A DNA stretch of 64,000 nt from Lepidodermella squamata (lineage: Eukaryota > Animalia > Gastrotricha): the NCBI GenBank assembly GCA_047495785.1, contig JBLDXI010000028.1:682001-746000 (forward strand), read 5' to 3'. Below the pieces are notes generated by a model. The model did no database searches. It was not told the origin of the DNA and saw only the letters and a program-made list of their open reading frames with translations. Position 1 is the first letter of the stretch. Each line of letters starts with the position of its first letter. Below, in pieces: positions 17,590 through 53,000 of the stretch. A program made the translations under genes and the position numbers.

Positions 17590-20500
17590 ATGTATGGACT
17601 GCTGTTGCAGGCTGCCCTCGAATTTATTTCGACCAAATTTTCGCTCGAATTAGCTCGCGAAATTTTAGAAGCCGCCGAAGGCTCAGAAGGTGGAAATGCG
17701 GCTGAAAAGTCTGACGTTACAGGTAAAATTAAAACTTGAATTCAACCAATTTTTCGAATGCTATTTTCATTTTATTTTTATATAATTAAGGAGGAAGTGC
17801 TGGTACAGTTCGAACAGTTCGAGCCGGCTTCGCTGTTCATCAGCTGTACAGTGATAAATTGCTGTCACGCTTGGCTAAAGCTACGGCCGACCTCACCGGA
17901 ATGTCCCTAGATTCGGTCCTCGAGCAACTCGGCCAGTTTTTCGTGCGATTCTCCCGCCAGAGCGGCTACGACAGCTTGTTACGCTTGATTGGCCGCAATT
18001 TACGCGAATTTATCATGGGCCTTGATAATTTGCACGAATATTTCCGCGGAACTTACCCGAAAATCAAGCCGCCTTCATTTATTGTTTTACAAGAGGACGC
18101 TGATGGTTAGAGAAATAATGTTAGGATTTAAAAATTTAATTTTTTTTAAATAATAGGAATGCTGATCTGCTACCGATCACCAAGAGGAGGCCTTCAGGGT
18201 TACGTTATCGGTCAAATGAAGGAAGTGGCTCGGGTCTATTTCAACATTCAAATGAATGTTACCATCATTTCGGTATCTGAGGATTCAAGAGGTCCGTGGA
18301 AAAGTTTTCCTAAAACTAAAAAATATTTAAAAATATGAAATTTCTGTATTAATAATTGAAAAAAAATCAAATTCTCAATTTCTCATCTTTTGTCTTGGAT
18401 TTTATTTTTTATTAGGTCGCTGGTCTGCGAATATGAAGCTAGAATTTGACAATTCGACGCAATTTTTGCTCGAGGGTCAGGATGCGTTGAGCACCCTGGA
18501 CGAAGTTAGCGGGCGCATTCTGAAAGCTGAAATGATCATGGATTCAATTCCTTTCTACATCGCCTTCAATAAGGACATGGAGATAGTATCGATTGGGCAC
18601 GGCCTTAAAGTTGCCATGCCAACTGTTGTCGGCGATGATTTCAACGAAACTTTTGAACTCATCCGACCTGCGGTTGCTTGCAATTGGGATATGGTAAGAA
18701 ATTTTAGATTTATCACGGAAAATTTGATAAATATTCTTGATTATAGATTATGGACTACCGAAATAACGTAGGTTGACTATTGGACCGTGGAATTTAATTT
18801 TTAACGCCTTGATATAAGGTTTTTGAGATACAATCGCTGAAGGCTATCGAGCGTCGAGATAATAAAATGCACGGATCGACGATCAAAGACGATGAGGGTA
18901 ATTTCCCTCAAATTTAAAAAATAAAGAAAAATCGATATTTTTATACAGATCGATTAATTCCGATCCGATTACGAGGTCAAATGATTTATTTCAAAGAATG
19001 GGACTGCATAATTTTCATGTCCATGCCTGTTATTGAGAGTAAGAATATTTTTGAAAAAATTCTGAATTTTCAAAATATTTCCCACAGGCATGAGAGAATT
19101 GATTCAGCTTGGACTGAAAGTTCACGAGCTTTCAATGGCAGACAGTAGCCGCGACCTTTTGACCTTGAAGGTAATTAAACTCATTTTTGTCTGGATTTCG
19201 ACATATTTTTCGTATATTTTAGCACCACAAAGAAATCGGAAAGGATCCTCTTCTCATTCAGGAAGCGAAAATCGGAGCGAAACTCGATTATTTAACGAAA
19301 GAAGCAACGGGGTAAGAGCGATTTTCCGAATGAATCATAGTTTTTCAGAATTATGATTATTTTCAGGTTTAAATCAAAGCGAACCACCTTATTGGAAGAG
19401 GCCGTTCCTCGATTCTTGCTGAAGCATGTCAGCAGTATGGGAAAAACACAGGTAAACATTCACTGAAGCCTAAAATTTGAATTTTCAATTTTCGATCATT
19501 CGTTGATCAAATCCGCCCTTTTCTATAAATGATATGATGAAATGAAATTATTGGAACTTTCAATTTGATCGCATTTTGATATCACGAAATTATTGAAACA
19601 GAGTGCAGATACCGTAGCTATTCTGGTTCTGAATTTCCACCAATTGGACAGCATGTTAGGTCCTGGAGTTACTCCACGAGGTAAACACGTACAATATCCT
19701 CTGAAATTTCGATAAACTTGACTGATTTTGCTAGAAATCATCGGCATGATCAATTCAATGTCATCGAAATTCGACGCAATCGTCCAGCGATACAATTACA
19801 CGCGCGTTTTCACGGTTTCTAACGACTACACGGTCGCATTTGGCATGCCGTTGTTAAGTCACCTTCCGGCTAATTTCGCCATTCTCGTCGCGACAGAACT
19901 GTTCGATGCTGTTGATGCGGCTGGGAAGGAAAGCCTGGCGAAGACTAAGACAAATTTGAAGCCAGATGTGAGAATTGGCATTGACATCGGCCCAGTTGTG
20001 GCCGCAGTAATTGGTGTCACCCTGCCGAGATATGTCGTTTTTGGCAAAACTGTTACCGTTGCGAATCGATTGAGCCTACTCGCATACGTAATTTTACCGA
20101 ATTTCCATTTTATTTTTCCCTTTATCCAATTTTTTAATATTATTTTCTAGCCTAGAGAAATCACGGTTACAGGTCGCGTTATTGATTCGATTGAAAGTAA
20201 CGAATTCAAGGACGCTTATGTGGTCAATTTTATGAAAGAAGTTGAGTTCCCGGTAGGTGTCCAAGATCGAGATTCCTCCCTTCAGAGTCTTCAATTTTTT
20301 TGTATTTAGGATGCTATGCACTTGGGCAAAACTTCGATGTACAAAGTTGAGATGATTGATCGCAAAAAATTGACGAGAACCGAGCGGCGCGTCAAAATGG
20401 CCGGGGCCGGCGGTGGAGGCAATAAAGGCCTGCTTGATGCCCTGGAAAGTGGGTCACGTGCTACTACTCCCATGACCGTGGTTAGTGGATGATATCAAAA

Positions 20501-20933: not shown

Positions 20934-21615
20934 ATTCGACCAGTTATCACAACAATAAAAACCATAACCTTTAATTTTGCTGTTCCACATGAATATGGAA
21001 CGACATCGTAAATGCACACGTTTATTGTTCATTTGATCTCACCTTGATCTGACTAGATTATTCTTAAATCTTTTATCGATCCTGTTTCCTTATAATTATT
21101 CCAACATTAACGGCACGTTGTATGCAATAAACCCTTTATATTGTTGTAGAGATTTGATCTCTCTTTGAACCAATATTTGATCAAAAATCAGACATCTATT
21201 CTCACCTTTGATATGATTTAATCCTAACTTTTGATGTCAAAGTTGTGAACAACATTTGATATTTTAAAAAAATCGTCCAAGAAGTGCCAGCAAATTTTCC
21301 AAAGTTGATCTCAGGTTGATCCCGTTTTGATCTCATTATAACAGATATGATCCATTTTTGACCCGATGTCTTGAGACCGTTATCTATTACTAGGGAAGGG
21401 CCAAAGGTGAGGATGTTCAATTTTCCTGTAATGCGACAATTTTCTAGGAATTCTCTATCTACGAAAGTCCAGCCCTGCTCCCCGTATTCATTTTTCGCTT
21501 ACAAGTTGAGTCATGCAGCTTGATAATTAGTTTATTCTTATCACTTTGGCGGTTAAAACCCAGTTGGGATATCACACTCCAAGCAGCATCCAGCATCGTT
21601 TTCGTCAAGTGTGAA

Positions 21616-24600
21616 ATGCTGAAGTCTGAATCTTACGTTAAAGTCAAGAAGGAGCCAATTGGTTCCGGATCCTTCGGCGATGTCTTTCTCACGAAGTCAA
21701 TGCATTTTGGTGACAAATTGTTCGCCATGAAAAGGGTTAGCATCTCCAAGATCTTAACGTTGAACACGTCGGATCCTGAACTGCCACGAAAACTATTACA
21801 TTTGGCTGAGAAAGAGGTATAGACCTCTCTGTCTTGCAGCAACTAATAACTCATTCTTTATAACAGGCGGAGAACATGCGGCATGTGGAGTGTCAGAATG
21901 TAGTAACGGTTTACGACTCTTTCACAGGTACTTCCTTATTCAAAGGCTCAACAAATCGAATGAAGGGTTGGTTAAATTTATGATCTTCCAGAGTTTACTG
22001 GGACTGAGCAGGGTTACTTCTATACCATTATGGAATATTGCGACGGGGGCTCATTGTGGCAAGTGATTCAGGAAGCTAGTTTTAAAAACGAGCACTTCCC
22101 AGAGCTCACAGTTCAGTCATGGACAAAGCAAATGGTGGAGGCTCTCAATTTTATCCATCAACGTAACATTGTTCATAGGGACATCAAACCTGGCGTAAGT
22201 TGATTCCTAGATTAAAAATGTGCAGCTAGAAATAGGATTTCCGCCCGCTGCAGAACATGCTGCTCTCTAAAAATCGAAGAATTTTGAAGCTAGGAGATTT
22301 CGGGATAGCAAAGCACAAAGACGAGTAAGTTCACTCGAAGATGTCATGAACAACAGTGAAGCAAAATGCTATAAATCCAGAGTGACAGGAACTGGAGTTG
22401 GGACGTTCATGTTCTTCGCGCCTGAGTTTCGTCAGGGAGAGCTCTACAGCCCTAAATGCGACATTTGGTCTCTGGGAGCCACCATCTATCAGTTGGTGAC
22501 ATTTGATACCAGGGTATGCTTATCTATAATAAGTGAGCGTGTTATCTAAACAGGATATCATCTCTTGTGCGCTCCTCAGTTTGACCAGCCCTTTCAAGTC
22601 ACGAACTTTGGTTACCATGCTGATTTGGACGAGCTGATAACGAAGATGATGGCGGCTGATCCTGATGACAGGATAACTATGGCACAGGCTGCTGCCCATC
22701 CATTTTTGAGTAAGAGAATTAGAGAATCAACCATTTAAAAAGACCAATATCGAAGCAATATCAAATGCATTTTACCAACGCATTATTGTAGGGATACTTG
22801 AAAAGTCAAACCCGAAACGCTAATTCGAGAATACGTAATGTGAAGGGAAGAGGAAGCGTGGAAGATAGGGGTGGGGGCCATGAGACGTAGCTATGTCTCA
22901 TGGTGGAGGAGGATGGGAATAGGGAATAAGGAAAAAGGGAGAAGAGAAGGAGAGGAAGGGGAATTGCTGGAAGAGGTGTTGGGGTGGACAATCGATAGAT
23001 AGGGGCGAATTTCTTGGTATTTTATCATAGTGCATAGAGCTCAGTGTTTAGGAATCATCTGTTAAAAAGATATTCCTGAAATCCACAATATACTTGCGTA
23101 TCTCTTTGAAGATTTGCCATACATCGTATTCATCGGCGCCGTTGGAAGCGGGAAAACCACTTTGGCTGAACGATTGACGGGATACACGCTTGCCACCAGC
23201 GATTTCGGCGAAAGCGTAACTCGTGAAACCACTGTGTACACCCTGCCGGCTTTTGATTTCGCGGACACTCCCGGTTACAAAGCAGTGGACAAGAAACTTG
23301 ACCACGCAATTCACATCGCTAAAGCTCTAAACTATCGCCCAGTGACTCGAATTTTCGTTGTTTGCAAATTCGACAATCGCCTCGATAACATGCTGCACGA
23401 CGTGGCCTGTGTTGTAGATCCGTTGTCTGCTGATCTCAAGGATAATATGACAATAATAATCTCTTTTTGGGATTATGCCGACAATTTAAGACAGTCTAAG
23501 GAGGAAATTTGTAAACAGGTTGAACAAAAGATGCGTAACCGTTTTAATGTCGATAGTTTTCTTTTCGTCTCCAAATCAATGAACAACATCGAGCAAACTC
23601 TAATCGAGTTCTTGAGCCAGCGCAGTCTCGCCGGGGCCAAAAAGATAGCAATTACGGTGGATGACCTTTCTGTGTATTTCGACCTGAAGGAAGGGGAGAA
23701 GGATGTCCTCAGATCAGCCAACTACACGACATCTGAAGCAAGAAATTTCGCCAATAGCGCCATCGAGCAGGCCGAGAAGATTGAGAAACCTTTTGAACGA
23801 CAGGACTTCCTCTTCTCTATTCTGCAAGCCATGAAGAGACATTTCACTCAACTCATCGAGCTCTTCGTAAAGGCTAGTAACCTGGACGTCAGTCTGGTAA
23901 TGATTGAATGGGTGAAACAATAATTATTGTTCCTATGTTTTTTCTTCCTAATACAGGTTGAGGACTACTTCTGGGTGAAATTTGTCAAGGATGATGTTAA
24001 TAGGGTTCTCGATGGATTTGTCATGCACTGCCAACAATTCCGTAACTATCTGGAAGGAAGCGTGGATAAGGAACGGCCATTTAGGAAATGCCCTCATTGC
24101 GGGTGCATTTGGACTAGAGTCGACGGCTGTGATGGCCCAACATTTTGTGGCGCTGTACCTTCAACTTCTGCCTTCGGTGATGCTAAAGAGTTGATTGATT
24201 GGAAGTGGACGAAAAATCTTCGAAATGGACGTTATCAGTTTACAAAACAATCCACAGAAATCAAAATTCGTCCACGCAGCCAGCTTGGAAAGATAGAGTT
24301 TCGGAGAAATCAGCTCGAAAGCATTAATCCAGAAAGCGTCAGACGGATCTTCGCATTTTTGACACATAACCCATTCGATCCTAATGAGGTGCAGTTCGAT
24401 ATTGACACCCCTACCCTATGGAATAAGATGATAAACCTTGCTATGGAGTCTGATATTTATGACTCGTGGTTACGTTTCATCAAAAATTTGGTGGCTACGA
24501 AGGCGGGTCTCATCGTTTTGCGATGCCCTCTTAATGACCGGACGGCATGTCTCCTTCACGAGATAATCGATAACCTGTTCAATGCGCCTCTGACAGGCGA

Positions 24601-25000
24601 CAGTTTTTTGGACCTTCTTCGACGCTCCGACGGACTAAGCCATCAGGATGTTAAATTTCAAGAAGCGTTGAGCGATTGGTACAATGGATTCGCGTTTCTA
24701 GTTTCAGATGCTGAGAGAAACTCCTCCCGTTTGTTTCATGAAGCGTGTGAAGCATTAACTGCTCTTAACGTCAACTTGGAACTTACTGAAAAAGGTTACG
24801 GCTGCGGGAAGGAGATCACGTGGAATGACATGCCTTGCGTCGATGTTCCGCAGAATGTTTTCGACATGGACGAATTTGAACTGCGGCGAATGATTTCATC
24901 CGTCGCCATTAGCAACCCGGTCGCGGATCAGCGCATTCGGCGGGAGTTACTCGAACGCTTCGATCGCACCTGTGTGAATCGGGAAAGCTTTGTAGCTTGA
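21616..25000 (+). CDS. NEK-like Ser/Thr kinase fused to an AIG1/GIMAP-like TRAFAC GTPase and a Cys-rich Rcat-like region (multi-exon)
   Basis: Kinase motifs GSGSFG, AMK, HRDIKPGN, DFG, APE and DIWSLG at 21616-22709. GTPase motifs GAVGSGKT, SVT and DTPG in exon 23070-23896. Last exon 23957-25000. The phase-1 donor at 22710 matches the acceptor at 23069, and the GTPase exon has no in-frame ATG upstream of the P-loop. Confidence 0.75.
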
Positions 25001-27055
25001 TAATGTACATTTCTTGGTACCTACTTGGTACCTATTGTTCAATTTTCTGGAATTATTGAACTGTGATTCACATAAAAGACTCATGAAAGCTTCAATTGGC
25101 TAAATTTTCGCATATGATTTAATTGTGCCTTATAACTGCACAAAATGAGGGCAGCAAAAATGACCGTAAATTGGGCTTACTTTATTTTTTTATTTTTGGT
25201 AATGAATGGCATTTAGGCACCTATGAGACGATTTCGGAAATGCTCGAACTTCAGGAATATTCGGTAGGTCGATACGGTGTAATGAAACTAGAAACTTTGT
25301 GGCATTTTCAACCTGGCCTTGATTATTCTGGATAGGCAGCTTCCCGCACATGGACTCTTTCATTGGATTTGGACAATGACAATGCATTTGGACAAAACGT
25401 TATCCTGAAATCGATGCAGTTTCAGTTTTTATTATGATTACTTCCGTTTGATGCCTTCAGCTATAATGATAATTTTTTGTAAAAGCAGAGAGCGGTTAGC
25501 ACAAAACCCGAGAGACACAACATGGTCGCAGAGTAATAATAACATATAATGATATAATAATAATATATCAGTTCGATGTGTTTTTTGCAGTGTGATACTT
25601 TTCGTTCGCTGACAGTGCATATTTCAGGTGACAATAATAATAATAATTATAATAATAATATATTTCAAGATTTTCCTTCGCAGATAGCATTTTGATAACC
25701 GTGGCGCATATAATAATTTACCGATTTTTTATACAATTGGTAATAATACAATAATATATTGAAAAATGGTACAAAGAAAATGACGGATTTTTTCTCGCTC
25801 AAAAATTAAAACAAAATTAGTAATGAAACAAAAGAAAAAGCGGAAGAAATTAACTAAGCCTCGTGTTTTATATTCATTTCTATGAATGCTGATATTATCT
25901 TAGAATCCAAAAATGGAAATTGTAATTCATTAATTAGGGAATAATTTCGCGGCTAGACAAGGTGTTTTCACAATTAATATTTGTCGGCTTTTGTTATTAT
26001 TTAAGCGTGTGTGACAAGTGAAACGACGCCACTCAAAGCGAGTCAACAACCCCCGGAAGAACAATGAGATAAAAAGGCATTGTATTGTTGTTTACAGCGA
26101 CACAAAAGCGGCTAAAGAGATAGCTCAAGAGATGACTTTTGATATACAATGACGAAAAAATCGGTGAAATTGAAATTATTCAAGTATAATATAAGAAGAA
26201 AGAACAGCAGCAGCAATTTTTCAGCGTCAAAACTAGTTCAAAGTGTTCGGATTGCGTATTTTTCAAATAATTAAGGTACATCATGTGCACGCACTAGTGA
26301 GATGTCGCTGGTAATAGTTATTATTGTTAGATTTCATCTTGGAAAAAAACAAGCAGTTCAAATTTCAGTAATAGAATATACAAATAAAAAATTTACTATC
26401 TAATGGCTAACAACCTGTGCTCACGCAGTGTGTGGAATTTTTAGTCATTTCTTTTCTTTACATTGATGCTTCACGTTGCAAGAGCAGTTCAAATTTTCGG
26501 ATAGAAAAATTTATCATTTTTTCAAAATTACAGTAATAATATCAATTTTTACTCTGATTAAATACAGGGGTGATGGAAGATCGACGCTATAGGCCATTTT
26601 TCAATCGGTCCTGAGATCGAGACACGACTGTTCATAACATGTGGTGTGTGTATTGATTGATAATGTTTATCCACGGAGATTACGAAAAAATACACGCGGA
26701 GTAAAGCAACAAATGGAGCAGGTAGGGCGCGTTTGCTTTTGAATGATTATTTCATGTTCAAGGCGATTTTTGGTAGCAAATCTAGCGATATATTTTTACA
26801 GGTAAATGAGCCCTTGCAACAATATAGCCACAGAGAAAAATTCGTTCAAGGTAAAGGCACAAATAATTGCGAAATTTAAATTGATTTTTTCATTCTTAAC
26901 ATTTCATTTTACCTTCCGGATTTTTCTCTGCGAATGTATTTTATAGGATTCTATGATATATATTTTTCAGGCGGTGCGGGAGGACCTCCACAATCACAGA
27001 TAATTTTTTACTCAGAAAAATTCCATTACTTTTACTCATTAATTTATTCAATAAA

Positions 27056-30000
27056 TCAAGATTCACTCGAACCGTCGCCGTTCGAAGCAGCCGGCGGCGG
27101 CCGTTTAGTCGGGGTAGCGCCAGGGTACAACACGCTGTTCGGTACGGAGACAACGGCCGGCCCAGCCGAGCGCGACATGGTTGAGGTGTTCGAATTGAGG
27201 CCGCCAGCCGGGGTCGCTGAGGCGGAACCGGCGTGTCGCTGCCAGAATTGTTGAAACAGCGAAACAGCGTCGATAGAAACCGACAAGTGCTGCGTAGTCG
27301 GGATGGCTGAGAATCGTTTCGAGCCGGAATTGTACTTGAAAAAGTGTTCAATCATGGCGTTTTTTACGGTTTTCGGCCCGATGCCGTGGATGCGCTCGAT
27401 GACGGGCGCGTCCGGTTCGAACGTGTACAGCCCGCGGTATTGACAGCCGGCATCTCGGAATAAAATGACAAAATGGCGCGTATTCGGCGCAGCTTTTTCA
27501 AGCTCGTGCAGGGCCTCTTGCCGCGCTTTCGCATTCGCCCCACCTGCTAAGCAAGTGTCTCTTATCGCGTTGTAGACCAGATTTCGATTCGACTTCGCGG
27601 ATGGTTGAACTCGCAACGGCACGCTTGGGTTCACTAGAATAAAATAAATAAAAATGAATTTTCGGCGAATTTTTCCACAATATTAGTATGAATTAAACAT
27701 GTAGTATTTTTTCAAACAACATTTACACGCAAGCTGTTAGCTTGGTCCATCATGCGTCATCAATCCCGAGTTGCCGCACATATATACGTATGTAAGTACA
27801 GAAAGAGCAAGCCCGTTAGTTGTTATTATTACATTAATGTTAGTAATCCGTTGATTTTTACGCGTTCGCAGAGTGTTTCAACAGGTTTTAATGTTTTATT
27901 AGCCTCTCACGGACACACGTATATAGCGACGTGAAAACTAGGTAAATAAACCGGGACACGTCAACTCTGAGGCTAAGGCGCGAGGCAAGCTATCACAAAG
28001 CACATCAATTTTTCATTAGCTGACCAGGCTTGAATTAAAATTTGATAAATAAAGGAAAATTTATCGATTTATCACAAAATTTGAAAATAAAAATATTTGA
28101 TTTGAGGTCAGCATTTATAGTGCTTTTTAAGCTTTTCTATCCTAAAATATTTTCATCAATAGCCTCCTGACATTTTTTGCCGTGAATATAAATTATACTA
28201 TCCCGGCATCATAGCAATTATCCCGAGTAATGAAGGCCACTTATATTCAACAATACAATTACACCCGAGAGCATTTGTTTACCCTCTCTCTCGTGTTTTC
28301 ATGTACCAGTGACATGGAATGTTTACCGAACCCAACTGGTACATACATCGGAATAAATACAGTAGCCTAAACAAACGTCCTGCCCGCAATGTATATTATC
28401 TGCCCATACACAATTGAAACACTCTGTAGACGGCATTTCGACCAAAAGATAGACGTTAATAGAGATAGATAGATGATAGAAAAGTGGGCAAGCGGACACC
28501 ATGTAAGTATTGCGTTTTGTACACCGAGCCTGTGCGGTTCCAAGGCTGCGTGTGTGCTGCGGTGTGTGGTGGGTGGGTGGGTTACCTTTGAGTGAGCTCA
28601 AGCTCTTCGCCGAGCGCAACGTCGCGCCGAGCGGGCACAACGCGTCGTGGTCGTTCCACGGCCGCGGCAGTGCCAGCAACTGGTCAATCAGCGCCCGGCT
28701 GCGTGATCCTATAATCCGTTCAGATGCATGGATACATTCAAATTAAAGACGTGCACGTGCGCAATAGTTTGTTGGTACAAAAGTTTTGCTTGTTAAATTA
28801 TTACAAGTAATATTGAGAAACTGAAAATTGTGCAAATATCACAGACGCTGCAAGTCAAGACAACGTGCTCAGCACATTTTTGGATTCGAATTGGATTTGA
28901 TAAGAAAAAATCTCAATTTTGAGAATGAAAATTTAACAAAAACCCAACACCTCTTCCAAATTTGAAGAAAAAGTCCAAGTAAAAAATATGCAAATGCCAA
29001 CTATTTCCAATTTTTCAAATTATCTAAAATTTAGATAAAAATCATTCAATTTATCAAAAAATTAGAATTTTTGAAAAATGAACCAATTCATCTCATCTGA
29101 AAATTCCAATAAAATTTCCCAATTTTTTCATAAAAATCTAGAATTTCGATAAAATATTCAATAAATAAAATTCACAAATTTCTCATTTTTCCAATCCAAC
29201 TTAGGAAAAGAATTCCTGAAATCTTAGAAGAATTAATTATCTCATAGAGATTTAAGGCTTTGGAATTACAACTTAATCAATTTTCAAACTATTGAGTCAA
29301 AATTCAATTCGAATCCAAATAATTCTCGTGCTTGGTTGCAGAAAATTGTTAGAAATATCCTCAAATAAAATCAGCATAAAACCAACCTGTTGCTATACTC
29401 AACGTATCCCCGTCATCGTTACTCAATCCATCGAGCGTCGACGCGTGCCGACTCGACAGCGAACCAGGCGGTTTCGGCGCCCTGGCCGCAACCGGCGTCC
29501 TGCCCGGCGTACTCGGCGGAGAAGGCGCGGCCAAACCAGCCAAATTTTCGTGCTCGCTCTGCACGGCAAGAGTGCCTAAACCCTTCGGCTTCGGCCTCGG
29601 TTTCGCGCCGGCGGACAGCGCATCCCTCGATTTCGACTTGATCATCGTCCCAGACGGTGTCGAGCCGTTTTTCATCGTTGGAGGGGCTAGCCGCGACATA
29701 TCAATCGCCTCTTCCTCCGCTTTTTTCTTCGCCAGGTACTCCTCGAATACCTGCCGCTGCTTCATGCGATGTTCAGCCCGTCGCTTCTCCTGCTCGTCCT
29801 GCTTCAAGCGAATTTCTTCACGCCGTTTCGCCGCATCAACGTCTCGCTTCGATAGGCCACCGTCATTTTTGCCAACAGACGCCTGGGTTAGCTCGAGTTT
29901 TCGTTTAATTTCCAACTCGACGCACTTTTGCCGCCGTCTCCTTTCCAACTCATCGGCATCGATCATATCACCGACTACAAAAGCGACATTTTGCTGCTGG

Positions 30001-33000
30001 GGTGATTTTGAAGATTCTGAAATCTGCTGTTCTTGGTCTTCTTCGATTTCTTGATGATTCTTGTGGTTATGAACGGCTAGACTTGTCGTAGAATTCGACG
30101 CCATTAGTCGGTTTTGCAATGCGCTCAGTGACTGTGATCGGCGAACCTGGCTGAGATTGGCCAGGCTTTCGTCTAAATGGTTGGAATAGTCGAGTTGTTG
30201 GTCGTTCGCTGTAGTAGTCGTGGTTGAGATGATAGAGCCTGGGCCCGGGGCGGTGCCGATCGGGACGAAAAACGCGCCGGCGGGGCTGGTTGCGGCGGCG
30301 GCTGCGGTTGTTGCGAAGGCGCTGGGTCGCTGGCCTGGCGCCGGACCGGGAAGTAACAGGGATTGCGTGGATTGGAAGTGGGTCGGGAACGGCTGCGCGT
30401 AGTACGCCGTTTGACCGTTCGGGGCAGGCAGGGTCTGGTAGACCACGACAGGCGGTGGAGCGACAACTACAGGCTGCGGATGAGGTGGAGCCTAAACATT
30501 AAAAAATTCAATAAGTCAACAAAATCATTGAAATATTGTTCAGAATTCAACTTTTAAAATCGATGATATTCTCAAAATTAAAGTAGCTGAGTGGACACAA
30601 ATCGAATTAATCAAAATTTGATCAAAATCAATATCTGATGTAAGGCATCAAATTTTGGCTACAAGTAACCAGCTAAAACATCTTCAAATTTGGCAATAAT
30701 ATGACAGATACATCCTGTACAAATTATATGGTAGCAAAAATCAAACGTCTTTTCTACGCTTTACTTGGTATTCTTAACGCAGTTGGAATCGATTATTTCT
30801 AGGAAAATAATGAAATCATACGGTTCACGCCACGTTAAGGGCCAAGCAAGCCACACATTACCCCCAGAAAGCCATATTTAAAAATTAAATCCCCAAGAAA
30901 ATCGATCAAATAAAAGGAATAGCATACTCTAAAAATCACTAAATAAATCACTTACAGCAATATAGAATCATTAAAAATTAAAATGAATATGGCTCATAAA
31001 TAGGTCACAATTGTTCCCAACAAGGTCAACGGCTGTGACTTTTGAGGAGATTTAAAAAAGGAAATCCGAGGAAAATTTTAGGCGTAGTTCTCAACAAGTC
31101 CTAAACATGATGAAAAAAGCTGCTTGAAACTGTGCTACACGATCTGTTCTTCATATAATTCAGTTTTAGCGCGGCTGCGTTGAGAATGTCGAATTTTAAA
31201 ATTGAAAGATTGAATATAAATAGAAATAGTTTATTTAGTTGTAGACCCTTGAGATGACTAAAAAAGTCGTTCAAATTTCAAAAATTCCATCAATGCAAGG
31301 AGTTTTACATCATTTTTTTTACGGAAGTCTCCAGCAGATCAAATAATAATAAAATTCCAAAACTCTTTAGCCAATTTACCTGTGGCATAGGCCGTTCGAT
31401 ATTTCTACGCCGCGTACCGCCAGGCGAAGTCAAAGACGACAGCTGCACATGCAAATCCGACAAACTCTGATTCAGCTGTTCCAACTTCGCATTATAGCCA
31501 TCATTCGCCACACTGCCGCGCGGACTCGCCCACGCACCCTGGTCCGAGGTGCGGCGGCCACTCGACGTAGTCGAAGACAGAGTGTTATACCCAATGCGAC
31601 TGCCAACCCCGTTGTTATTACTATTCTGCTGATTTTGCTGTTGAATCCGCTCTTGCTCTCGCCGTTTACGCTCCAGTTGCAGTTTCAAGGTCAACGAACC
31701 CGCTGATGCGGAACGGGCGGTCAAACCAGGCCGAGTTTGCACGATAGCCTCCACCTCCTCATCCTCACGGCTTGAATTATCAACAATTTGCTGCTGTTTC
31801 TGCTTCTGTATCTGCTGTTGTTGTTGCTGCAGCTGAGCCCAGGTAATCCGGACAGAACCATTCGACCGGGGCGATGACAGACCGCCCTCGGATTCAGTTG
31901 TCACAACCGGAACGCCTGCTTCTATCGCCGATTCAGCAGTTGAGAACTGGCGACTTCCAGCCACGGTGTAAGAACTTGCGCCGAGAGATGGCCTCTGCTG
32001 GTTTTGAAGCTGCTGGGCGTAGGAAAATGTCATTGTTCCGCCTGAAGACCCGGTTGAAGGCCGGGCGGAGGACCCGGAAGATTGACGCAGCGATAGGACG
32101 GGTGGGCTTGATAACACGGGCGAGTCGACGAAAACGGTGCCGGGTGAGGGCGAAGCATTTGCTCCAAAACCACTATCTCTCTGGAAATTATAAAAAAAAT
32201 CCATTAAATTTCATAAAATATTTTACAAAAGCTAAAATAAGGGTTTTAAATAGGATTTTTAAATAACGCATGCAGGTCAGACATTCAACCCTGGCCGCAA
32301 ATAAAAACGATGAACGGACTAAGAACAAAAAGAGCTTCGATTTCAAGACAAAAAAATATGAAATTACCCAAATTCCCATTAAAATTACATTTCTGAGCAT
32401 GGTCCGATGAATTTTTCCCTATCAAATTCCGAGCCTAGAAAATCCGATGGCCGGAATTCAGAAATTAAAATGATTTTGAACACAGAATGAAAAATTTCGG
32501 CCAAATAGAATCAATAAATTCAGGATTTAAATCGAAATTTTCACTTCATTGCCATCGAAGAAAGAATCTCTTTAGCCTATATTTTGTTTGTCTGAAATCA
32601 AAGCTCTCCACGTAAGACATTATTATAAAGGACTGTCGACAAAAGCGGCCAACACCGACGCTTCAAAACACCAGGGATTTTTCCATTTCAATATTATAAG
32701 GGATAAATAAGGATTTTTCCGACACGCCGGCTCTGATTCTTCTCGCTTCAACTTGCCGAAGAAGGCGCTGCAATGCGAACAAGCCCAGGTGGGTAGGTAG
32801 GCAGTGACTGCCGTTCAGGTACGATAGCTAGGCGCAAACTTCGCGACAGCCCGGCCACGCGGCGGCTCGGTGGCTGTTGCATGGTCGACCAGCCCCGATA
32901 TCGGTCTTCCGGGTAGAAAACCTGGAGCAAATTCGACCCGGAGTATGAGCTAGCTAGGCGCGGTCTCGCTGACGGTTCGCGAAACCGGGCCGAAGCGAAG

Positions 33001-35091
33001 TCGTAAGCACTTCGCGACGACGCAACGACGTAGGGCTGATGCGGGTATTGCTGGGCGTCCTCGGCTGGAATGTAGTAATAAGCCCGGCGCCTGTTACTTC
33101 GGTGCTGGTGGTGATGAGAACGGCGGCTTTTCACGAACAGCTTTTTGCAGGAGCAAATCAGTTATTTCGATTGTTAGTAGGTTTGTTTCAAAATAATAAT
33201 AATATTTTAGGTGCAGGTCAATTGATTGAGCAAACATTCTCCGTGAATCACGATGCAAAAATTATCGATTGTTCAATCAAAAATCGAGGTTTTACAAGAA
33301 ATATGAACAATTTTGTTAATGCCCACTTACGCAACGATAGGCTGGGTAAAATGTTCCTTAAAGCTTACCAAGATTATTATTCGAAAACTATTTCAGAACT
33401 TCAGTAATACTAACATAGAATAAACTATAAAATCTTCGATTTTTAAACATCAATTACGAAACTTATCCCGGATCGCTTATTCATACCTCACCTCGGCTTA
33501 CAATATCAATTGGATCAAATTAAATATTAATGCTCAAAGGCATGAATCATCACCGATAGGCAGCTGAATCATCCAAAATCAATATGTTCGAAAATGTATA
33601 TATCCAAATAAGCGAATTTTCGTCTTTAATTTGTAGAAAATCTCTACTCCCTCAAAATCCAAGATGGCATTACTATTCAGAGAAAACCTCGATTTATGAC
33701 ATAAATCGATCTGAGAAATTTTGATTATCAGTTAAACTAACTTTTTTGCCCGGAGCCATAGCTAGAAGACCAGCATCCCCGCCATCCGGCTCATCTGACA
33801 CAACAACGACCGTGCCAGTCGCTTGATGATGCCGGCTATCGATTTCAGAAAAATCGCCCGAAAAATCGACTTCATTGAGCAGCATGCTGTGACCATTTCC
33901 ATTGCCATTAACGTAACCCGACTCAGATTTCGTCGAAGAAACATGTAGCTGGTTTTCGTTGTTACCGTTGTTGTTAGTCATAACAGGCGCTACGCGACTA
34001 CACGCGCATAATAACGGCGGGGCTGTGCATAAACTCGCGAATAAATCGGCTAGGAAGACGAGAACGTTAGCCTTGAACGACGAATGCATGTATAGCAAAT
34101 CTTCGAGGCGGAAGAAGTAGACAGCTTTATCGAGATGGTCTGAAAATAGCCGCACGATTTCGAGGTTAAAACACGAATCTGCAACGCCCAATGGGTCTTT
34201 TAGGGCCACGTCGTTGATTCTAAGATGATCAGGTGCGTAGTGGCAAATCAACGTGGCTAAGGCAGCTCCGTCGCTAATATCAGCCAACAAATCTTTCACA
34301 AGAGGTATTACAGGCGCGTTCGATTCGTCTAATCGAATAGTGGAGCGACCTGACTGCCGTGTTAACTGGGTCGCACGTTCCCGCCGTTCTTGCTCGAGGC
34401 GAGCTCGAACGGCGTGGCAGACCTTAGCAATCCACAGAAGTAGCGCGTCCTCAGTTGTACGCGGCTGTTCCAGCGGTGATAAATGAGCAATCAAGCGAAT
34501 AGCAGCCGTCACTCGGTCCGTGCTGAAGTTTTGCACCAGATACGCGCGCATAAACGCGTCAATCACCGTTTGATGCACTGAAGCTCGGATCGGGTTGTTC
34601 AAGGACAGCTGCGATTCTATCCTTGACAGGGTGTTTTTCCCTGAAGGATCGTCCGATAACGTGTAAAACCCACATTGGTGTAAAATAAGCAAAACTGAGC
34701 CATGAAGTGAAGCTGATCCGTGTGAATTCACATTATTAATGGCTTGCTGTCTTAAAATAATCCTAGCAGCATCGGCGTACGCTCTTCCTGATGTCAGCAA
34801 AGCTGCCACTGAAGGGTTTAATTCCAGCTGTTTACTCGACTCTTCATCAGTATATTGTTCGTCGATAAGAGGATCTTCGTATTCGAGAGGTACCCGGCCA
34901 TCAAAAACTTTCGATAGTAACCATGCGATAGAACAGCGAAGGCGAGACTGATGAGGAAAAATTGATTGAAATAAAATTAACTAAATAATTCACATCCTCA
35001 CCTTTTTGTGATTGTATAGCTCCAAAGGCACAATATCGGGAACCAAGCTATGCCTCAGTTCGTTCAACTGGAGGCGAAATAATTCTGACAT
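27056..35091 (-). CDS. CAMSAP: CAMSAP/Patronin microtubule minus-end binding protein (CH domain, coiled coils, CKK domain)
   Basis: N-terminus DIVPLELYNHKK/SRLRCSIAWLL; CH domain EDALLLWIAKV...DISDGAALATLICHYAP; coiled coils LQLERKRR and KRREEIR; CKK domain KSNRNLVYNAI...HFVILFRDAGCQYRGLY...FFKYNSGSKRF. Confidence 0.93.
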
Positions 35092-43750: not shown

Positions 43751-44464
43751 TCATTTGCCGGGCAGGATGATACCGTCATACTAAAGAAAGATAACATGTA
43801 AATCATAATTAATTGAATAAACTGATGAGCAAACCTTCTGTTGGAACCACTTCATGGCTTCTTCTCTGGTCACCCGCTGGCGCTTGCCGATGCAGCCGGG
43901 CTTGGCGCGGCGTTCGTAGACGCGGTGGCCGGCACGGCCAAGGACGACGAAGAAGTTCATACCATAGATACCGATGCTAGGGTCGTACTTGAGGCCCAAG
44001 TCGATATGTTCCTGGATACCGAAACCGAAGTTTCCTTCTTGCGAGAAGTTGCGCTTAATCAACTCGTATTCCTTGACCTTGAGACCCTTGTCGAGGATCT
44101 CGTCGGCCTTCTCGCCGCGGACGGTCACGTGGCACGCGATCTTTTCGTTACGGCGGATACCGAACGAGCGCACAGTGAAGCGGGCTATAATTATTATATC
44201 GAAATAACTAATTCAGACAGCTATGATTTGATAGATTAACTCACCCTTGGAGAAGACGGGGGTCTGGCCAGTCAGCTGTTCCAACACCTTGGCGGCACGA
44301 GTGAGACGATCGCCAGATTCGCCGACGCAAATGTTGACGCACAGTTTCTCAATGTGAAGATCACGCATCGGGTTGGTCTTGATGCGGTCCTCGCGCTTAA
44401 CGCGCTTGGGCTTAGCGGCAGCCGGGGCAGCGGGGGCCTTCTTTGCGGGTTCCTTACCAACCAT
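43751..44464 (-). CDS. RPL11: 60S ribosomal protein L11 (uL5), three coding exons
   Basis: [43 protein letters not shown] / [19 protein letters not shown]...YDPSIGIYG...AMKWFQQK / YDGIILPGK*. Confidence 0.97.
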
Positions 44465-47031: not shown

Positions 47032-50000
47032 TCAAAATGGAGCATCCAGCTGCATGCAGGTACAGTGACAGCCGACAACCGGGCAGTAGATGTACTGGTT
47101 GAACCATTGCAGCAGATGATGAGCATGACCGCCATGACGGCACGACTGGCACCATGTGATCCAACCGTCATCGCCCACTCGCGCCAAACACACGGCACAA
47201 CGCGGCAGGGGACGCTTGCACGACTGACAATAAATTGGCTGAAAAAGAGGAAAACACGGTTAACCACTTACAAAACCGGATCGGTTATTGTTGAAAAACT
47301 ATAAATAGAGGCCAAATTTGCCCAATTAGCGAGACATACAAATTCAACTGAAAACGAAGCTAAAAACTCACCAAAACCCGTTGCATTCCAGCGAGCGGAA
47401 CGCTTTGAACAACCGCCTTTTCGCAGTAAGAGCACCCAAGCGAGACGGTGGGCCGCGGTTTGCCAACCGGAACGCCCAGCGCCCGTCGGAAATCGTCGAA
47501 AGCCGCCCGTTGCCTGAACAGCCTGAACCTATTGAGCAGTTGCCGGTACGTCTCAGTCCACGCGTCGACCTCAGACGGCGGCTTGCGACCGTTACCAAAC
47601 GCATGCGCACAGGCCAACGCTACAGTCTGAATATCACCCGTAACATTCAAATAATTCTGAAGTAATCGCACGAAATCGGTTGATTCAAGACCCGTGAATA
47701 GCAGGCCAGTCAAACGGCCGCCATTCAAATGCTGCCGTGAGACTACGGTAATGAATTTCGAAAATCGTTCATCTGGCAGGTACATTGCTGCTATGGCGAC
47801 TCTGTCCTCCAGAACTAGACCGTCATCGTAGAGTAAGGAATCGGCTGCGGAGGCGAATCGGCCGAATGTCAACAGCAGCTTTAGGTAGGGTTCGGTGACT
47901 TTTTTCAGGTTCGCCTCGACCATGGCGGGTAGGTTGGATTCGACGGCGAGTACGCCGGGCAGGGCCAAAGCGACAATAGGCAACATGTCGTCGGTCGTAT
48001 TCGCTTGGCTGCTACTCGCATGTGACAGCACTTCGAGAGCTAAAAATATTGAATATTAACAGTTAAATCTAACAGCGGAGGCAATTTAATAGTGAACGCC
48101 GTAATTATGGCAGTTCTTAAATTTTTCCTAATAAGTCATGGATCCCGTATAATAAAACCTTGTTACTTTTAGTGGCTTATTATCTTTTTCGCTCATGGCA
48201 TCCCAAGTGCCTAACTTTGCCCCGAATTCTTGCAAGTGTTGGCAACCTATTCCCTTCAGAATAAGGAAATTTACTCCAAATTGCTCGAGATTATTCGCCC
48301 TATTCTCATTTACGAAACAACCGAGATTACGTCGCAGAGACGACGAAGATCCCGACAAGCCTCCTCGGCCGAGCAACATGCCGCCACCGTTGCCCGTTGC
48401 GCCCGTCGACTGCAGCCAATGACGCCTCATTCTGCCTCGTGCCTTAATCACAGGCCTATACCGGGTGAAAAGAAGAAGACAGCTAACGCGGAGCCAGTTT
48501 CACCATCTTCGAATGTGGTTATGGCGTCTAGAGCTTCATCATCTTCCTCCGTTGTGTCTTGCTACTTGCTACGACGACTACTCTGGAGCGGCCATTGCCG
48601 ATTCCGAGTTGGCGTTATTTGCAGACTCCAAAAGCCCACTTACTGGTCTACCAGGGTATGTTCCTACAGGATCTCCTTGCGAGGATGTCAACAGGAGCCA
48701 GCTATCGAAGAAGTTGACTAGCTGATAACGTACCAAATGCTGTTGACTTCGAACAGTGCCTTCTCTCTCATTTCCATGGCTTGCTTCAGTAAACTATCGT
48801 TTTCATCTTTTTCATCATTTTTTTACGAAAACTAAGATCGAGCATAACATCGTGATTTTATATCGATAATTTTACCGATTTGATTTATTGTAACCATTTT
48901 AACCATTTACAATTTCAACGTCGTGTTTGTTTTTGTACTTAGCACGCTCTTCTGCTGTTCTTCTACATTTTATCTCTTAAAAAATTGTACAATGTCGATA
49001 AACGAGGCTGACCTGGCTAAAATTAGCATGCTGATCTCTGACAGTGAAACCCAAACTTAAGTCAATCAACTTTAGTCAATGAACAGGTCGGTCATGTCAA
49101 CTCGAGAAGAAGTCATATTATCATTCCGACGAAATAATCAATCTAAAAATTGAGGTCATAAAGAAGCTGCTTTACAACACATAATTATCTCTCGCGAAGT
49201 CAAGGAAAAGGCAGGTGAAACCAGCCACGGCTCGTCAAGGTCGACATTATCCAGCCAATGTACTAATGCTACGTTGATTCCCACTATATCTCTGACTTGT
49301 ATCAATGACTGACTTATACTGACTTTGCAATTAGAATAGCTTGGAGAACAGTTGTGGTGTCAAAATTTCTGGTACGTCCGAAATTCTGGAAAGATGCTTG
49401 TCTGACTAAATTGACGTGTCACAGCTCTACTAATGGCTTGGAAGGTGGCGCTTGTCAAAAGCGGTTTGCGGTCTATAAATTGCAGTGTTTGGATTATAAT
49501 GAGTACTATGTGGGCATGACCGGTCGGTCTGTGCAAAAGCGAATGAGAGATAACCATCTGGCGAGTATAAATCTATAAGAAAAATGCGACGGGCTACCGC
49601 TATGCTATGTTGTGTCATCCGACAAAATTCTCCACATCTCTTTATTTTAAGGCTATTATCCTCTACGGACCAGTGAATTTCTTTGAACCTAAATCAGCTT
49701 ATGAGCATATTTTTTATAAAAGTCTAAAACCTACTTTAAATACTAAGGGCTAATTTTGCTCCCATTCCCAACTAAGATTCAAATTTGAAAAGCTATCGAC
49801 CCCTTCAAATTTTAAAACATCAGTATCCGAGGTAAAAAATTGATGTGTATACCCTAAAATTCAAACGAAACGATAATATGAGAAGTTTTTCGGTTATCAT
49901 ATAGGGGTTATCGAGGTATAAGTACACTTCATTCAAGTTACATATTTTGGACAAAATAACAATCGAATACAAAATAATATGAAATCCAACTCACCGAGAG

Positions 50001-53000
50001 GCAATTTGAGTAGATACAGAGCGATGGCAGCTGCTCTCGCGGCTTGGCCAGGCAGTTCTGCAATCGCGCGAACGAACGTTTCAATGACAAAGTTATCCGC
50101 CGAGTTGTCTTGCACATTCAACACAGGCCAGCCGCACAGCCGAACGATATCCTGGCGTTCGTGAGCCACGTAGATTTTCGTCGTGAAATCAGTCGATTCC
50201 AACTTAACAGTTTTCTCATCGCGCTGTAACTGCAGCGACGAAGTTCGACCGCGGCTGCTAATGCCACCTGGAACAGCACTCAGCGGCGTTGTAGCCGTCG
50301 ACGCATTCGAAGACGTTCTCGGCGTGCCACAGCTGAAAACTGAGCAAACGCCGCGCAAGTCGATTTTGCCCTCGTTCAACGCAGTTGGCACGACGGAAAG
50401 CCGGTGGCGTTGGTTCAACCAGTTCCAGAAGGGTTTCGCCAGCTGATTCAACGGATGAGCGATTATTTCAGGGCTCATTCTACCTAAAAAAAATCAAATC
50501 AATCGTAAATATGTTTGTTAATTAATCGACCAGATAAAAATATTTCAAGCCGCATATGATTTCATGGAACGCCACGGGCCTAGGGGCTCGATAAGTCGTT
50601 CGGTGACCGATTAACGCCGGGCGTCAGCAGGGCAATTAGCAACCCGGTTAACATCAGCCATCAGCCATTAGAAAACGATGAAAGTGATTAGCACTAAATA
50701 CTGCAATCAAATGCGACCATAATCGCAATTTTTTCGACCCTTGCGCCATCTGAACGGCACTCAAGGCGAATTTCGAAAGGACCTCGACGGTCAACAAGAC
50801 GAGGCTCCTGTATCGATTTCACGCGATTTCTATGCCACCAAGATTTTTATTCCATTCTTAATAATCTAGTGTATTTTTACATCTCACTAGCATAAAGAGG
50901 CATGTCCTGTGTCCTCTGTGAGAATTTCAGACATAGGTATTGGGCGTCCCTGTAGATGTCAAGAACTGTAAGCCGATTTATGTATGTTAACTGAACGCCC
51001 GTTGCCTCGATACTAAATTCGACGTTCTCTTCTTAAGGATCTCAACTTGGACAATGTGCCTCTTATTATTATTGTTACCTCAAAGCCTTGCGAAGATTTT
51101 GATGGGGGTCGTTAAGAATCGGATTCTTCACTGCCGGGATCATTAATCGAACGTCAGCTATGCCACGCTATTGCTGAACAAAGAGATGAATACCGTGGCC
51201 TATGCACTGAATAATAAAATGTTTAGGGCCATGGGCCCATTCAAAAAGGTCCACCACGACCGTGGGACTGAATTTACCGGGATCGTTTTCAAAAAATACA
51301 ACATTGCGGTTGCGAGTCACCGCCGCGAAAACCATGGCAGAATGGTAAAGTTGAACGTGCCAACGCTACTATGGAAAGTCGCTTTTGTGCTCGGGTGATT
51401 GAAACGGAGACCCCTATTGGCTATCGATTCTCCCGAGCACCGTCTTCAAGATGAACTGTGAATGGACTCGAGTTAATGGCCAACCGCCTTTCAGTTTCTA
51501 CTTTGGTCGTCATCCTAGAGGCATGTTCGATGACTCCAACGCCGACGGAAAAGAGCTAAAGGTCGAAGCTAAGGCTAAGCTAATTGCTGAATGTAAAATA
51601 GCGAAAAAGAGCTAAAGAAATGAAAGAATGCACTGAAACGATTGGCTGCTGAAATTTCTAGCTTTTCAGGGGTCCAAAACTTTATACCTACTCTAGATTT
51701 ATACACGACCTCGGCTCACTTACGAAGACTAGCTCTGATCAGACAGAAACCTAGGTTATTCTAACTTATTTTATGCTCGTTTGAACATCATTTTCGGTCT
51801 ATTTTCAAGCCTGTCTCAACCCATTGCGCACGTCAAAAATTCGCTTAATGATTTAAGCAAAAATCATAAGCTACGAGTGCTGGTAGAAAAATTAAGCCTA
51901 GCAGAATTCGAATGTGCCGTCTGCAACGATTTAATTCATCCTGACAACCGTTTCCGCTGCTCCGGGTGTAACGTAGCTGTCCATGGCTATTGTAATGGTT
52001 TCAATGTCTCTCGGCTTTCTTTTTTTCGGATGCCGTTCCCTGCCTGCTGTTAGTACTCAATATCAGAACATCAAAGCTTGGGCCGTGGTATCATCTCCAT
52101 CGACATGTCGATGCTGTGGTAAGCCCGGCCTGGCTAGCAATTTATGCGAATCCTGTGGCTCCGCGAAAAACTTGTCTTTTTCGAAAAATCAAATTGCTAT
52201 TGCGGTAAACCTGTCTTCGCCGCCTGTTTTCCTGTAAAAGATGCAGATCCTGTAACTTTTCAGCACTTCTTTGTTTCGATCACTTTATGAAAAATGTTCA
52301 TCCCAAAAATTTCAAAAATTCAGGTGTGAACCCATACTTTTCTCTCAGAAAGTCTTGGTAGGAAAATTCCTTTATGTGGGTTCTGCTCATCTTATGATAA
52401 TTGCAAATGTATGGATCTTCTCAATCCTGTCTCGATTCTACTACGTCTTCAGCTCTTCTAGAACAGGAGATCAAGCTTCCACTTGTGTCCAATTTCAACA
52501 TTTTCATGTCATCTATCCAGCTTAAAATCGACCATTTATTTACATTTTGAACTACTCACGCAATTCAAACATGTCCGTCGATGCTTTATATAGAAAATGG
52601 CAAAAAATTTACCCCAAGGCGCGACTAGTTTCTGCGCATAGTCGCACTCGAGCCGGTATTTGATCAAATCCGACAGGTCCATGCGCGTAGCCGGGTCGAA
52701 CTGACTCGCGCCAGGCTCGTACTGCACCGATTTCAACGCATTGATATTGCGATTGGCACAAAACAAAATCGTATTATCCGGCAAAATGTGCAGTGTAGTC
52801 GGGTCGGTGAACGTCGACGCGACTAAATGATTGCGCGATATGATGGCTAACAACACATTTTTCGCAGTGCCGTGCCAGGCGAAGGTCGAAATCGCCTGGC
52901 TCGAGTCCAACGTTAACGGAACAGCTCGATCTGCGACGAAAGGCTCAATATCCCCAGCACTTCCAGACCCAGGTTCTTGTCCGTAGAGGTGGAATACCGT

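Follow-up and report, generated by a model that had tools for sequence, protein, structure and literature searches.

Does a single animal gene carry a protein kinase, a GTPase and a cysteine-rich zinc module in one reading frame? The question is raised by a locus at positions 21616-25000 (+ strand) of a 64,000-nucleotide (nt) stretch of Lepidodermella squamata DNA, called the window below, which a preliminary description made from the sequence alone had read as a fusion of a NEK-like kinase, an immune-type GTPase and an Rcat-like ubiquitin ligase domain. We lean towards reading the locus as one expressed gene, whose mRNA most likely encodes a kinase followed by a P-loop GTPase, a helical stalk and a one-zinc Cys module. 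The part that follows the kinase, judged by its sequence, is a full member of a conserved and unnamed eukaryotic protein family.

Gene organization

Frame reconstruction resolves the locus into eight open exons with GT..AG borders, of which exons 1-6 join into a protein kinase of 265 residues. The features, in window coordinates, are as follows.

21616..21816, + strand: kinase exon 1, with the ATG at 21616, the Gly-rich loop IGSGSFGDV and the FAMK lysine; joint 21816/21867 in RNA contigs
21867..21927, + strand: kinase exon 2, 61 nt, from frame reconstruction; upstream joint in RNA contigs
21992..22194, + strand: kinase exon 3, ending in HRDIKPG (HRD at 22174-22182); Pfam Pkinase, E 1.4e-15; joint 22194/22254 in RNA contigs
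22254..22324, + strand: kinase exon 4, NMLLS...LGDFG (DFG at 22296-22304), from frame reconstruction
22381..22513, + strand: kinase exon 5, with the activation loop, APE and DIWSLG; Pkinase, E 9.6e-8; RNA contig over 22381-22512, with a joint to 22580
22580..22709, + strand: kinase exon 6, ending in ...DPDDRITMAQAAAHPFL, then a phase-1 GTAAGA donor at 22710
22710..23069, + strand: proposed intron (an intergenic spacer if there are two genes), 360 nt, purine-rich; zero RNA depth over 22804-22970
23070..23896, + strand: GTPase exon, with a 15-residue linker, P-loop, DTPG, ISFWD as G4 and helical stalk; MMR_HSR1, E 1.1e-7; in RNA contigs
23957..25000, + strand: last exon, 347 amino acids (aa) plus stop, with a helix, the split zinc module and a tail; joint 23896/23957 in a 552-nt RNA contig
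24089..24151, + strand: Cys motif 1, CPHCGCIWTRVDGCDGPTFCG, with invariant C45, C48, G57, C58, C64 and G65 (last-exon numbering) in an 86-sequence alignment; predicted local distance difference test score (pLDDT) 85-94
24254..24787, + strand: insertion between the Cys motifs, lineage-specific and transcribed; helices predicted at low confidence
24800..24823, + strand: Cys motif 2, GCGKEITW, with invariant C283, G284 and W289 in the same alignment; pLDDT about 90

At the 5' end, we also note a candidate acceptor, cgttttcgtcaag|TGTGAAATG, 6 nt before the kinase start codon, and zero RNA depth over 21468-21634; the 5' end of the gene may be made by an intron in the 5' untranslated region (UTR) or by a spliced leader.

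Kinase and GTPase domains

The joined kinase exons contain a full set of motifs, namely the Gly-rich loop GxGxxG, the VAIK-type lysine (in FAMK), HRDxKxxN (as HRDIKPGN), DFG and APE, and each of the larger exons matches Pfam Pkinase by itself, up to E 1.4e-15. The match and the motifs are together those expected of a eukaryotic protein kinase, and the product of about 265 aa is most likely a catalytically intact Ser/Thr kinase. The preliminary description, which had an intact kinase ending in HPFL at a phase-1 GTAAG donor, was accurate on this point: all motifs can be read and GTAAGA is found at 22710. Its NEK-like label found no specific support. When the 67-aa exon 3 was used as query, NEK1 (E 2.2e-8) was one of many equally good matches, among CDPK, GCN2, PKG, Wee1, STK10 and CASK at similar scores.

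The GTPase exon reads GAVGSGKT (23135-23158), SVTRETT and DTPG (23264-23275). The one Pfam model for which it scores above the cut-off is the generic MMR_HSR1 (E 1.1e-7; 32.4 bits, cut-off 21.9), and it has the G1 GxxxxGKT, G2 Thr, G3 DxxG and G4 Asp of a TRAFAC GTPase of the Era/EngA/septin-like kind; its nearest solved relatives by sequence, found with a six-sequence profile, are Der/EngA (E 2e-6). It had been assigned to the AIG1/GIMAP/IRG type, and this was not upheld: neither AIG1 (PF04548) nor IIGP, the IRG model, matched the window GTPase at E <= 1. Some relatives in the family described below fall just short of the AIG1 cut-off (for example P0098, 26.8 against 27 bits), and an Atlas feature search placed the window GTPase near AIG1-bearing clusters. 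A Roco assignment fails as well: the Roc match is confined to the P-loop and, at 13 bits (E 0.1), lies below the cut-off of 27, and no COR domain was found with Pfam, as the preliminary description had said.

The C-terminal half belongs to a conserved, unnamed family

Compared exhaustively by phmmer with 1.84 billion cluster representatives (E <= 1e-3), the last exon matched 138 of them (clustered at 50% identity), the best at 41% identity, with no self-hit. The family has a characteristic layout in which a short N-terminus is followed by LPYxVLxGxVGSGKT, DTPG, T/S-x-[MW]-D as G4 and ~200 residues of helices, and then by motif 1 (RKCPHCGxVWxKVEGCDGxTTCG), motif 2 (GxGCGKxIxW) and a ~55-residue tail. 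The two motifs are 44-125 residues apart, typically about 52, with a beta-hairpin between them, and nine positions (C45, C48, G57, C58, C64, G65, C283, G284 and W289) are invariant in the 86-sequence alignment.

The window GTPase exon aligns end to end with family members at 30-34% identity, and this alignment together with the family motifs identifies the window protein as a true member. With such relatives as P0139, P0004 and the Physarum protein P0024 it shares the P-loop strand, DTPG, G4, the stalk, both Cys motifs and the tail: a P-loop GTPase lies ~290 aa upstream of CPxC-x(8-10)-GC-x(4-6)-CG, which is followed by GCGxxIxW and a tail of ~55 aa. The order of GTPase, helical region and Cys motif given in the preliminary description agrees with the gene structure found here. 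The sole departure from the family pattern within this half is the spacing of the motifs, which is 218 aa in the window protein. The extra stretch, about 165 residues and predicted at low confidence to be helical, has no homologues in the 138-representative search and no Pfam match. None of the relatives checked has a kinase; they are normally stand-alone proteins of about 420-480 aa with their own start, 30-42% identical to the window protein.

The last exon has no Pfam match and no match by sequence in the PDB, and word-indexed protein searches returned nothing for it, four proteins for P0004 and two for the zinc region of P0006. Database names of family members are generic (e.g. 'GTPase SAR1 family', 'EngB'), and no description of a GTPase-zinc family was found in the literature searched. 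The family is defined here; it has no Pfam model for its Cys module and hundreds of members in ciliates, and it merits a name. In one database match, P0001 (812 aa), the end of the stalk and the zinc module (CPHCSLVWQKMEGCDGSTEC ... GCGKLVQW) occur three times in tandem, almost identically; the protein may be genuine, or the repetition may stem from the assembly.

The proposed kinase-GTPase junction

The RNA evidence consists of contigs of 118-552 nt from run X1, which is labelled only 'RNA?'. That the run holds cDNA follows from the absence from its contigs of introns 1, 3, 5 and 23897-23956, each with GT..AG ends, giving four spliced joints (21816/21867, 22194/22254, 22513/22580 and 23896/23957). 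Kinase and GTPase exons are both covered, at 100% identity, and the two halves have similar coverage; within the proposed intron, X1 depth is low just after 22709 and falls to the zero interval listed above. Some X1 contigs also contain 'opposite strands' joints ~90-110 nt apart, at 20959-21434, 24158-24374 and 24959-25068, which are absent from the DNA run X2 and may be fold-back artefacts of the library or of the assembly.

The reading frame argues for a join between the two halves. At its C-terminal end the kinase reads DPDDR...AAHPFL with one further base before the donor TTGA|GTAAGA (phase 1, 22709/22710). The GTPase exon has the acceptor AAAAG|AT at 23069/23070, and the frame downstream, immediately preceded by a stop, does not open before 23066; with the AG at 23068-69, an exon beginning at 23070 requires a phase-1 partner. 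Joining 22709 to 23070 yields HPFL-N-IPEIHNILAYLFEDLPYIVFIGAVGSGKT and an uninterrupted frame of 889 codons, in which the intron at 23897-23956 is in phase 0. As had been noticed earlier, the GTPase exon has no start of its own: there is no in-frame ATG ahead of the P-loop, and the first one lies far behind it. Stand-alone relatives begin 6-30 residues ahead of the LPY strand, and the window exon has no such start, an absence that argues for a join to the kinase. An operon's downstream gene, or a spliced leader supplying the ATG, was considered and rejected, given the need for a phase-1 partner and the lack of an early ATG. We also note an alternative acceptor at 23111/23112 (tctctttgaag|AT), 42 nt downstream in the same phase and with a better pyrimidine tract; its use would drop 14 linker residues, giving 875 aa in which the LPY strand follows immediately on the end of the kinase. 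We infer from the frame that the mRNA is likely to join the kinase to the GTPase half across 22709/23070.

Several observations weigh against this join. None of the X1 contigs listed spans 22709/23070, such that the in-frame fusion originally proposed stands as to its phases and open frame and not as to the spliced joint. The proposed intron, at 360 nt, compares with 50-66 nt for the other six; the 23070 acceptor is an AAG with a poor pyrimidine tract; and if the donor at 22710 is unused the kinase frame simply stops at 22736-22738 (SKRIRESTI*), nine codons or 27 nt further on. The relatives point the same way. Pkinase is present in none of the ten longest family matches, and there is no kinase similarity or motif in the loci of three relatives (L001-L003). 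Two of these, L002 and L003, are the nearest genomic relatives, on environmental eukaryote contigs; L002 has its own Met 21 residues ahead of LPY, and L003 has no kinase motif in the 9 kb upstream. The missing contig itself carries little weight, because the joints of introns 2 and 4 are likewise absent from the listed contigs, though the kinase frame requires both, and because the contigs are so short. As for the relatives, a kinase not seen in any of those checked would be a lineage-specific addition.

These same observations can be accommodated by two adjacent genes, an arrangement that we consider possible but rather unlikely. The first would be a small stand-alone kinase, ending at SKRIRESTI* (22738) or in some other short terminal exon, and the second a GTPase-zinc-ribbon gene with a tiny first exon in 22740-23069, like the stand-alone, Met-initiated proteins that make up most of the relatives checked, L002 included. 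A phase-1 candidate for such an exon is present, ATGTCTCATG|GTGGAG at 22893-22902, the joining intron is six times the length of its neighbours and the joint is missing from the listed contigs; the in-frame kinase donor would then be a coincidence of one in three. However, the interval of zero RNA depth takes in both the candidate mini-exon and any 5' UTR, and the mini-exon donor GTGGAG is weak; only two ATG-started mini-exons with a phase-1 GT occur in the gap at all, at 22880 and 22893, and both have weak donors. Moreover, there is no AATAAA-type signal in 22710-23069, and thus none after the kinase stop, and RNA depth is already low past 22709.

The gap also contains a purine-rich, low-complexity stretch (22860-22990; GGAAGAGGAAG..., GGGAGAAGAGAAGGAGAGGAAGGGG) with a 26-nt inverted match at 22878-22903. 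No further copy of the proposed intron sequence was found within the window.

Weak resemblance of the cysteine module to RBR domains

An AlphaFold2 model of the window's last exon is of high confidence in the two motif regions only, and because a fold search with the whole 347-aa model gave generic helical matches only, we modelled a compact relative (P0139, residues 298-414; 82-sequence alignment; mean pLDDT 79). In this model three short strands surround CPHC...GC...C, followed by a beta-hairpin and by a strand after GCGK. With Foldseek, the module gave nothing significant, the local match to the RNF216 Rcat extending over 24 columns (42% identity, 1.4 Å, E 3.2). An independent structural search returned 27 of 48,161 chains at Z >= 2. 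The highest score, Z 3.5, went to the Rcat of louse parkin, with a match over 43 residues that takes in both motifs. Seven more RBR matches lie above the same threshold (HOIL-1 RING2 twice, at 29-30% identity; parkin IBR four times; and RNF31 IBR), as do rubredoxin and LysW-type zinc ribbons. At Z 2.0-3.5, the Rcat and IBR matches between predicted and solved structures are too low to prove homology.

Sequence searches gave no RBR domain. No exon matches the Pfam RING or zf-C3HC4 models, and the window protein and its 82 relatives (83 sequences) have no IBR or RING match, only weak zinc-ribbon matches; a profile search of solved structures with alignment A1 returned no RBR even at E 10. A match to 3-hydroxyanthranilate dioxygenase in that search was set aside as a chance similarity at CPHCG. 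The module and the Rcat/BRcat domains of parkin, HOIL-1, RNF216 and RNF31 have in common CPxC-x(8-10)-GC-x(4-6)-C followed by C-x3-hydrophobic-x-W, and the same predicted strand order. A tentative alignment to parkin would make C45, C48, C64 and C283 the zinc ligands and put C58 in the place of the catalytic Cys. Nevertheless, RBR domains have two zinc sites, which need eight ligands, together with RING1 and Cys-x-His, whereas the module has five invariant Cys only, a single site, none of these other features, and a hairpin and linker before its last ligand. We read it as a putative one-zinc ribbon of IBR/Rcat-like topology, split by the inserted hairpin.

Could it nonetheless be a working catalytic domain of the Rcat type? 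C58, in the hairpin turn at GC, would then carry ubiquitin, or a protein like it, as a thioester, and the whole protein would be a GTP-gated, kinase-coupled ligase, close to the kinase/ligase sensor of the preliminary description. C58 is invariant in all 86 sequences, the five invariant Cys are one more than a single zinc site needs, the best structural matches are those to parkin, HOIL-1 and RNF31 together with the local one to RNF216, and an IBR cluster turns up in the Atlas searches. Against this, no structural score reaches significance (Foldseek E > 1, Z < 4), the Pfam and profile searches are negative, there is no RING1 to recruit an E2, and the second zinc site is absent. In addition, the catalytic triad of RBR enzymes is Cys-x-His...Glu/Gln (PMC3940038), and the family has GCDG in place of Cys-x-His, with a nearly invariant Gly where the His should be. 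We consider a ligase quite improbable. The same low standing applies to its broader form, a speculation in which the family would be a new class of RING-independent, nucleotide-gated transfer enzymes with the hairpin Cys of an Rcat-derived module as nucleophile, wired in this lineage to a kinase to make a single-chain phosphorylating and conjugating sensor, possibly in cell-autonomous defence. Still, five invariant Cys and a weak likeness to the RBR catalytic domain pose a clear and cheap biochemical question.

That the GTPase half is a decaying remnant, transcribed by read-through after losing its start codon, is scarcely credible: it lacks a start of its own, but its two exons, whose intron is spliced correctly, keep an open frame of 622 codons, it retains every family-invariant residue and its RNA coverage resembles that of the kinase exons.

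A possible mechanism and its relation to known proteins

If the two halves are indeed joined, the Era/EngA/AIG1-like G domain might, in binding and hydrolysing GTP, switch the conformation or self-association of the stalk, by analogy with related septin-like GTPases, and the activity of the fused kinase would be the output of this switch. The zinc ribbon would be a fold of the IBR/Rcat kind pared down to a single zinc site, with a part in interaction or regulation. In the lineage of the window, a family member would have gained an N-terminal kinase, and the ~165-aa insertion, predicted to be helical, has been added to its zinc module. GTP gating, oligomerization and kinase output are each proposed by analogy, and, like the first two, any role in defence would be carried over from related TRAFAC GTPases.

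A kinase joined to a septin-like GTPase is not without precedent, as gene models with Pkinase and AIG1 domains have been described from the snail Biomphalaria glabrata and are also mentioned for salmon and fungi (PMC7053062). As described, the Biomphalaria models likewise have an N-terminal kinase followed by a septin-like/TRAFAC GTPase, with a function that is uncertain and possibly immune (PMC7053062). Unlike the window GTPase, theirs score as AIG1 by the Pfam model, and the description mentions no zinc module.

Roco proteins (LRRK2, DAPK1 and the Dictyostelium Roco kinases) resemble the window protein in having kinase and GTPase in one chain, where the GTPase may regulate the kinase intramolecularly. 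In LRRK2 the domain order is ROC-COR-kinase; here there is no COR, the similarity to Roc is at the level of the P-loop only and the kinase comes first. A more conceptual likeness is to RNF213 and ZNFX1, in which a large NTPase (AAA+ or helicase, not TRAFAC) is combined with a small zinc module, the RZ finger, possibly with a nucleophilic Cys and without a RING. Few single chains hold a kinase together with a GTPase, one of them being the medically important LRRK2; the fusion, if real, would be another, unrelated arrangement in reverse domain order, and a useful one for comparing the ways in which a kinase can be controlled by a G domain.

Distribution of the family

The preliminary description had pointed to GTPase-plus-CPxC proteins in ciliates and to a possibly patchy distribution, and both suggestions were supported. 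The source of most family members is metatranscriptome contigs, about 1.4 kb long; one each is from Physarum and from the transcriptome of the copepod Calanus. In a structural search of the Atlas the module fell in a cluster of 366 members, the largest found and chiefly from Ciliophora, and in another of 56 that includes a cnidarian record. The family occurs patchily, for the most part in protists. A giant-virus link hinted at by Atlas features was dropped when a scan of IMG/VR with the family pattern confirmed no relative. A metagenome scan gave no confirmed locus, and the window contains no paralogue of the locus.

Other additions at the N-terminus occur in the family, with CBM20 in P0006 and a SAM-like region in P0140. 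We also note that in L003 (9270-9320) an intron lies directly before the P-loop (..ccag|TCCATGGGCGCT, giving SMGAVGSGKTT), with the first strand on an unseen upstream exon; intron positions therefore vary within the family.

Genomic context

The neighbours of the locus are ordinary animal genes:

19728-20147: guanylate cyclase catalytic exon
27059-34809, - strand: CAMSAP/Patronin, with CKK at 27059-27634 (E 7.6e-44) and CH at 33697-34809; metazoan-type
43784-44173: ribosomal protein L11 (L5P family) exon
47363-53249, - strand: exons of MIOS (a GATOR2 subunit), WD40 and alpha-solenoid parts

With these housekeeping genes as neighbours, the locus is neither a contaminant nor part of an immune gene cluster. 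The metazoan-type CAMSAP/Patronin in particular supports an animal origin of the window.

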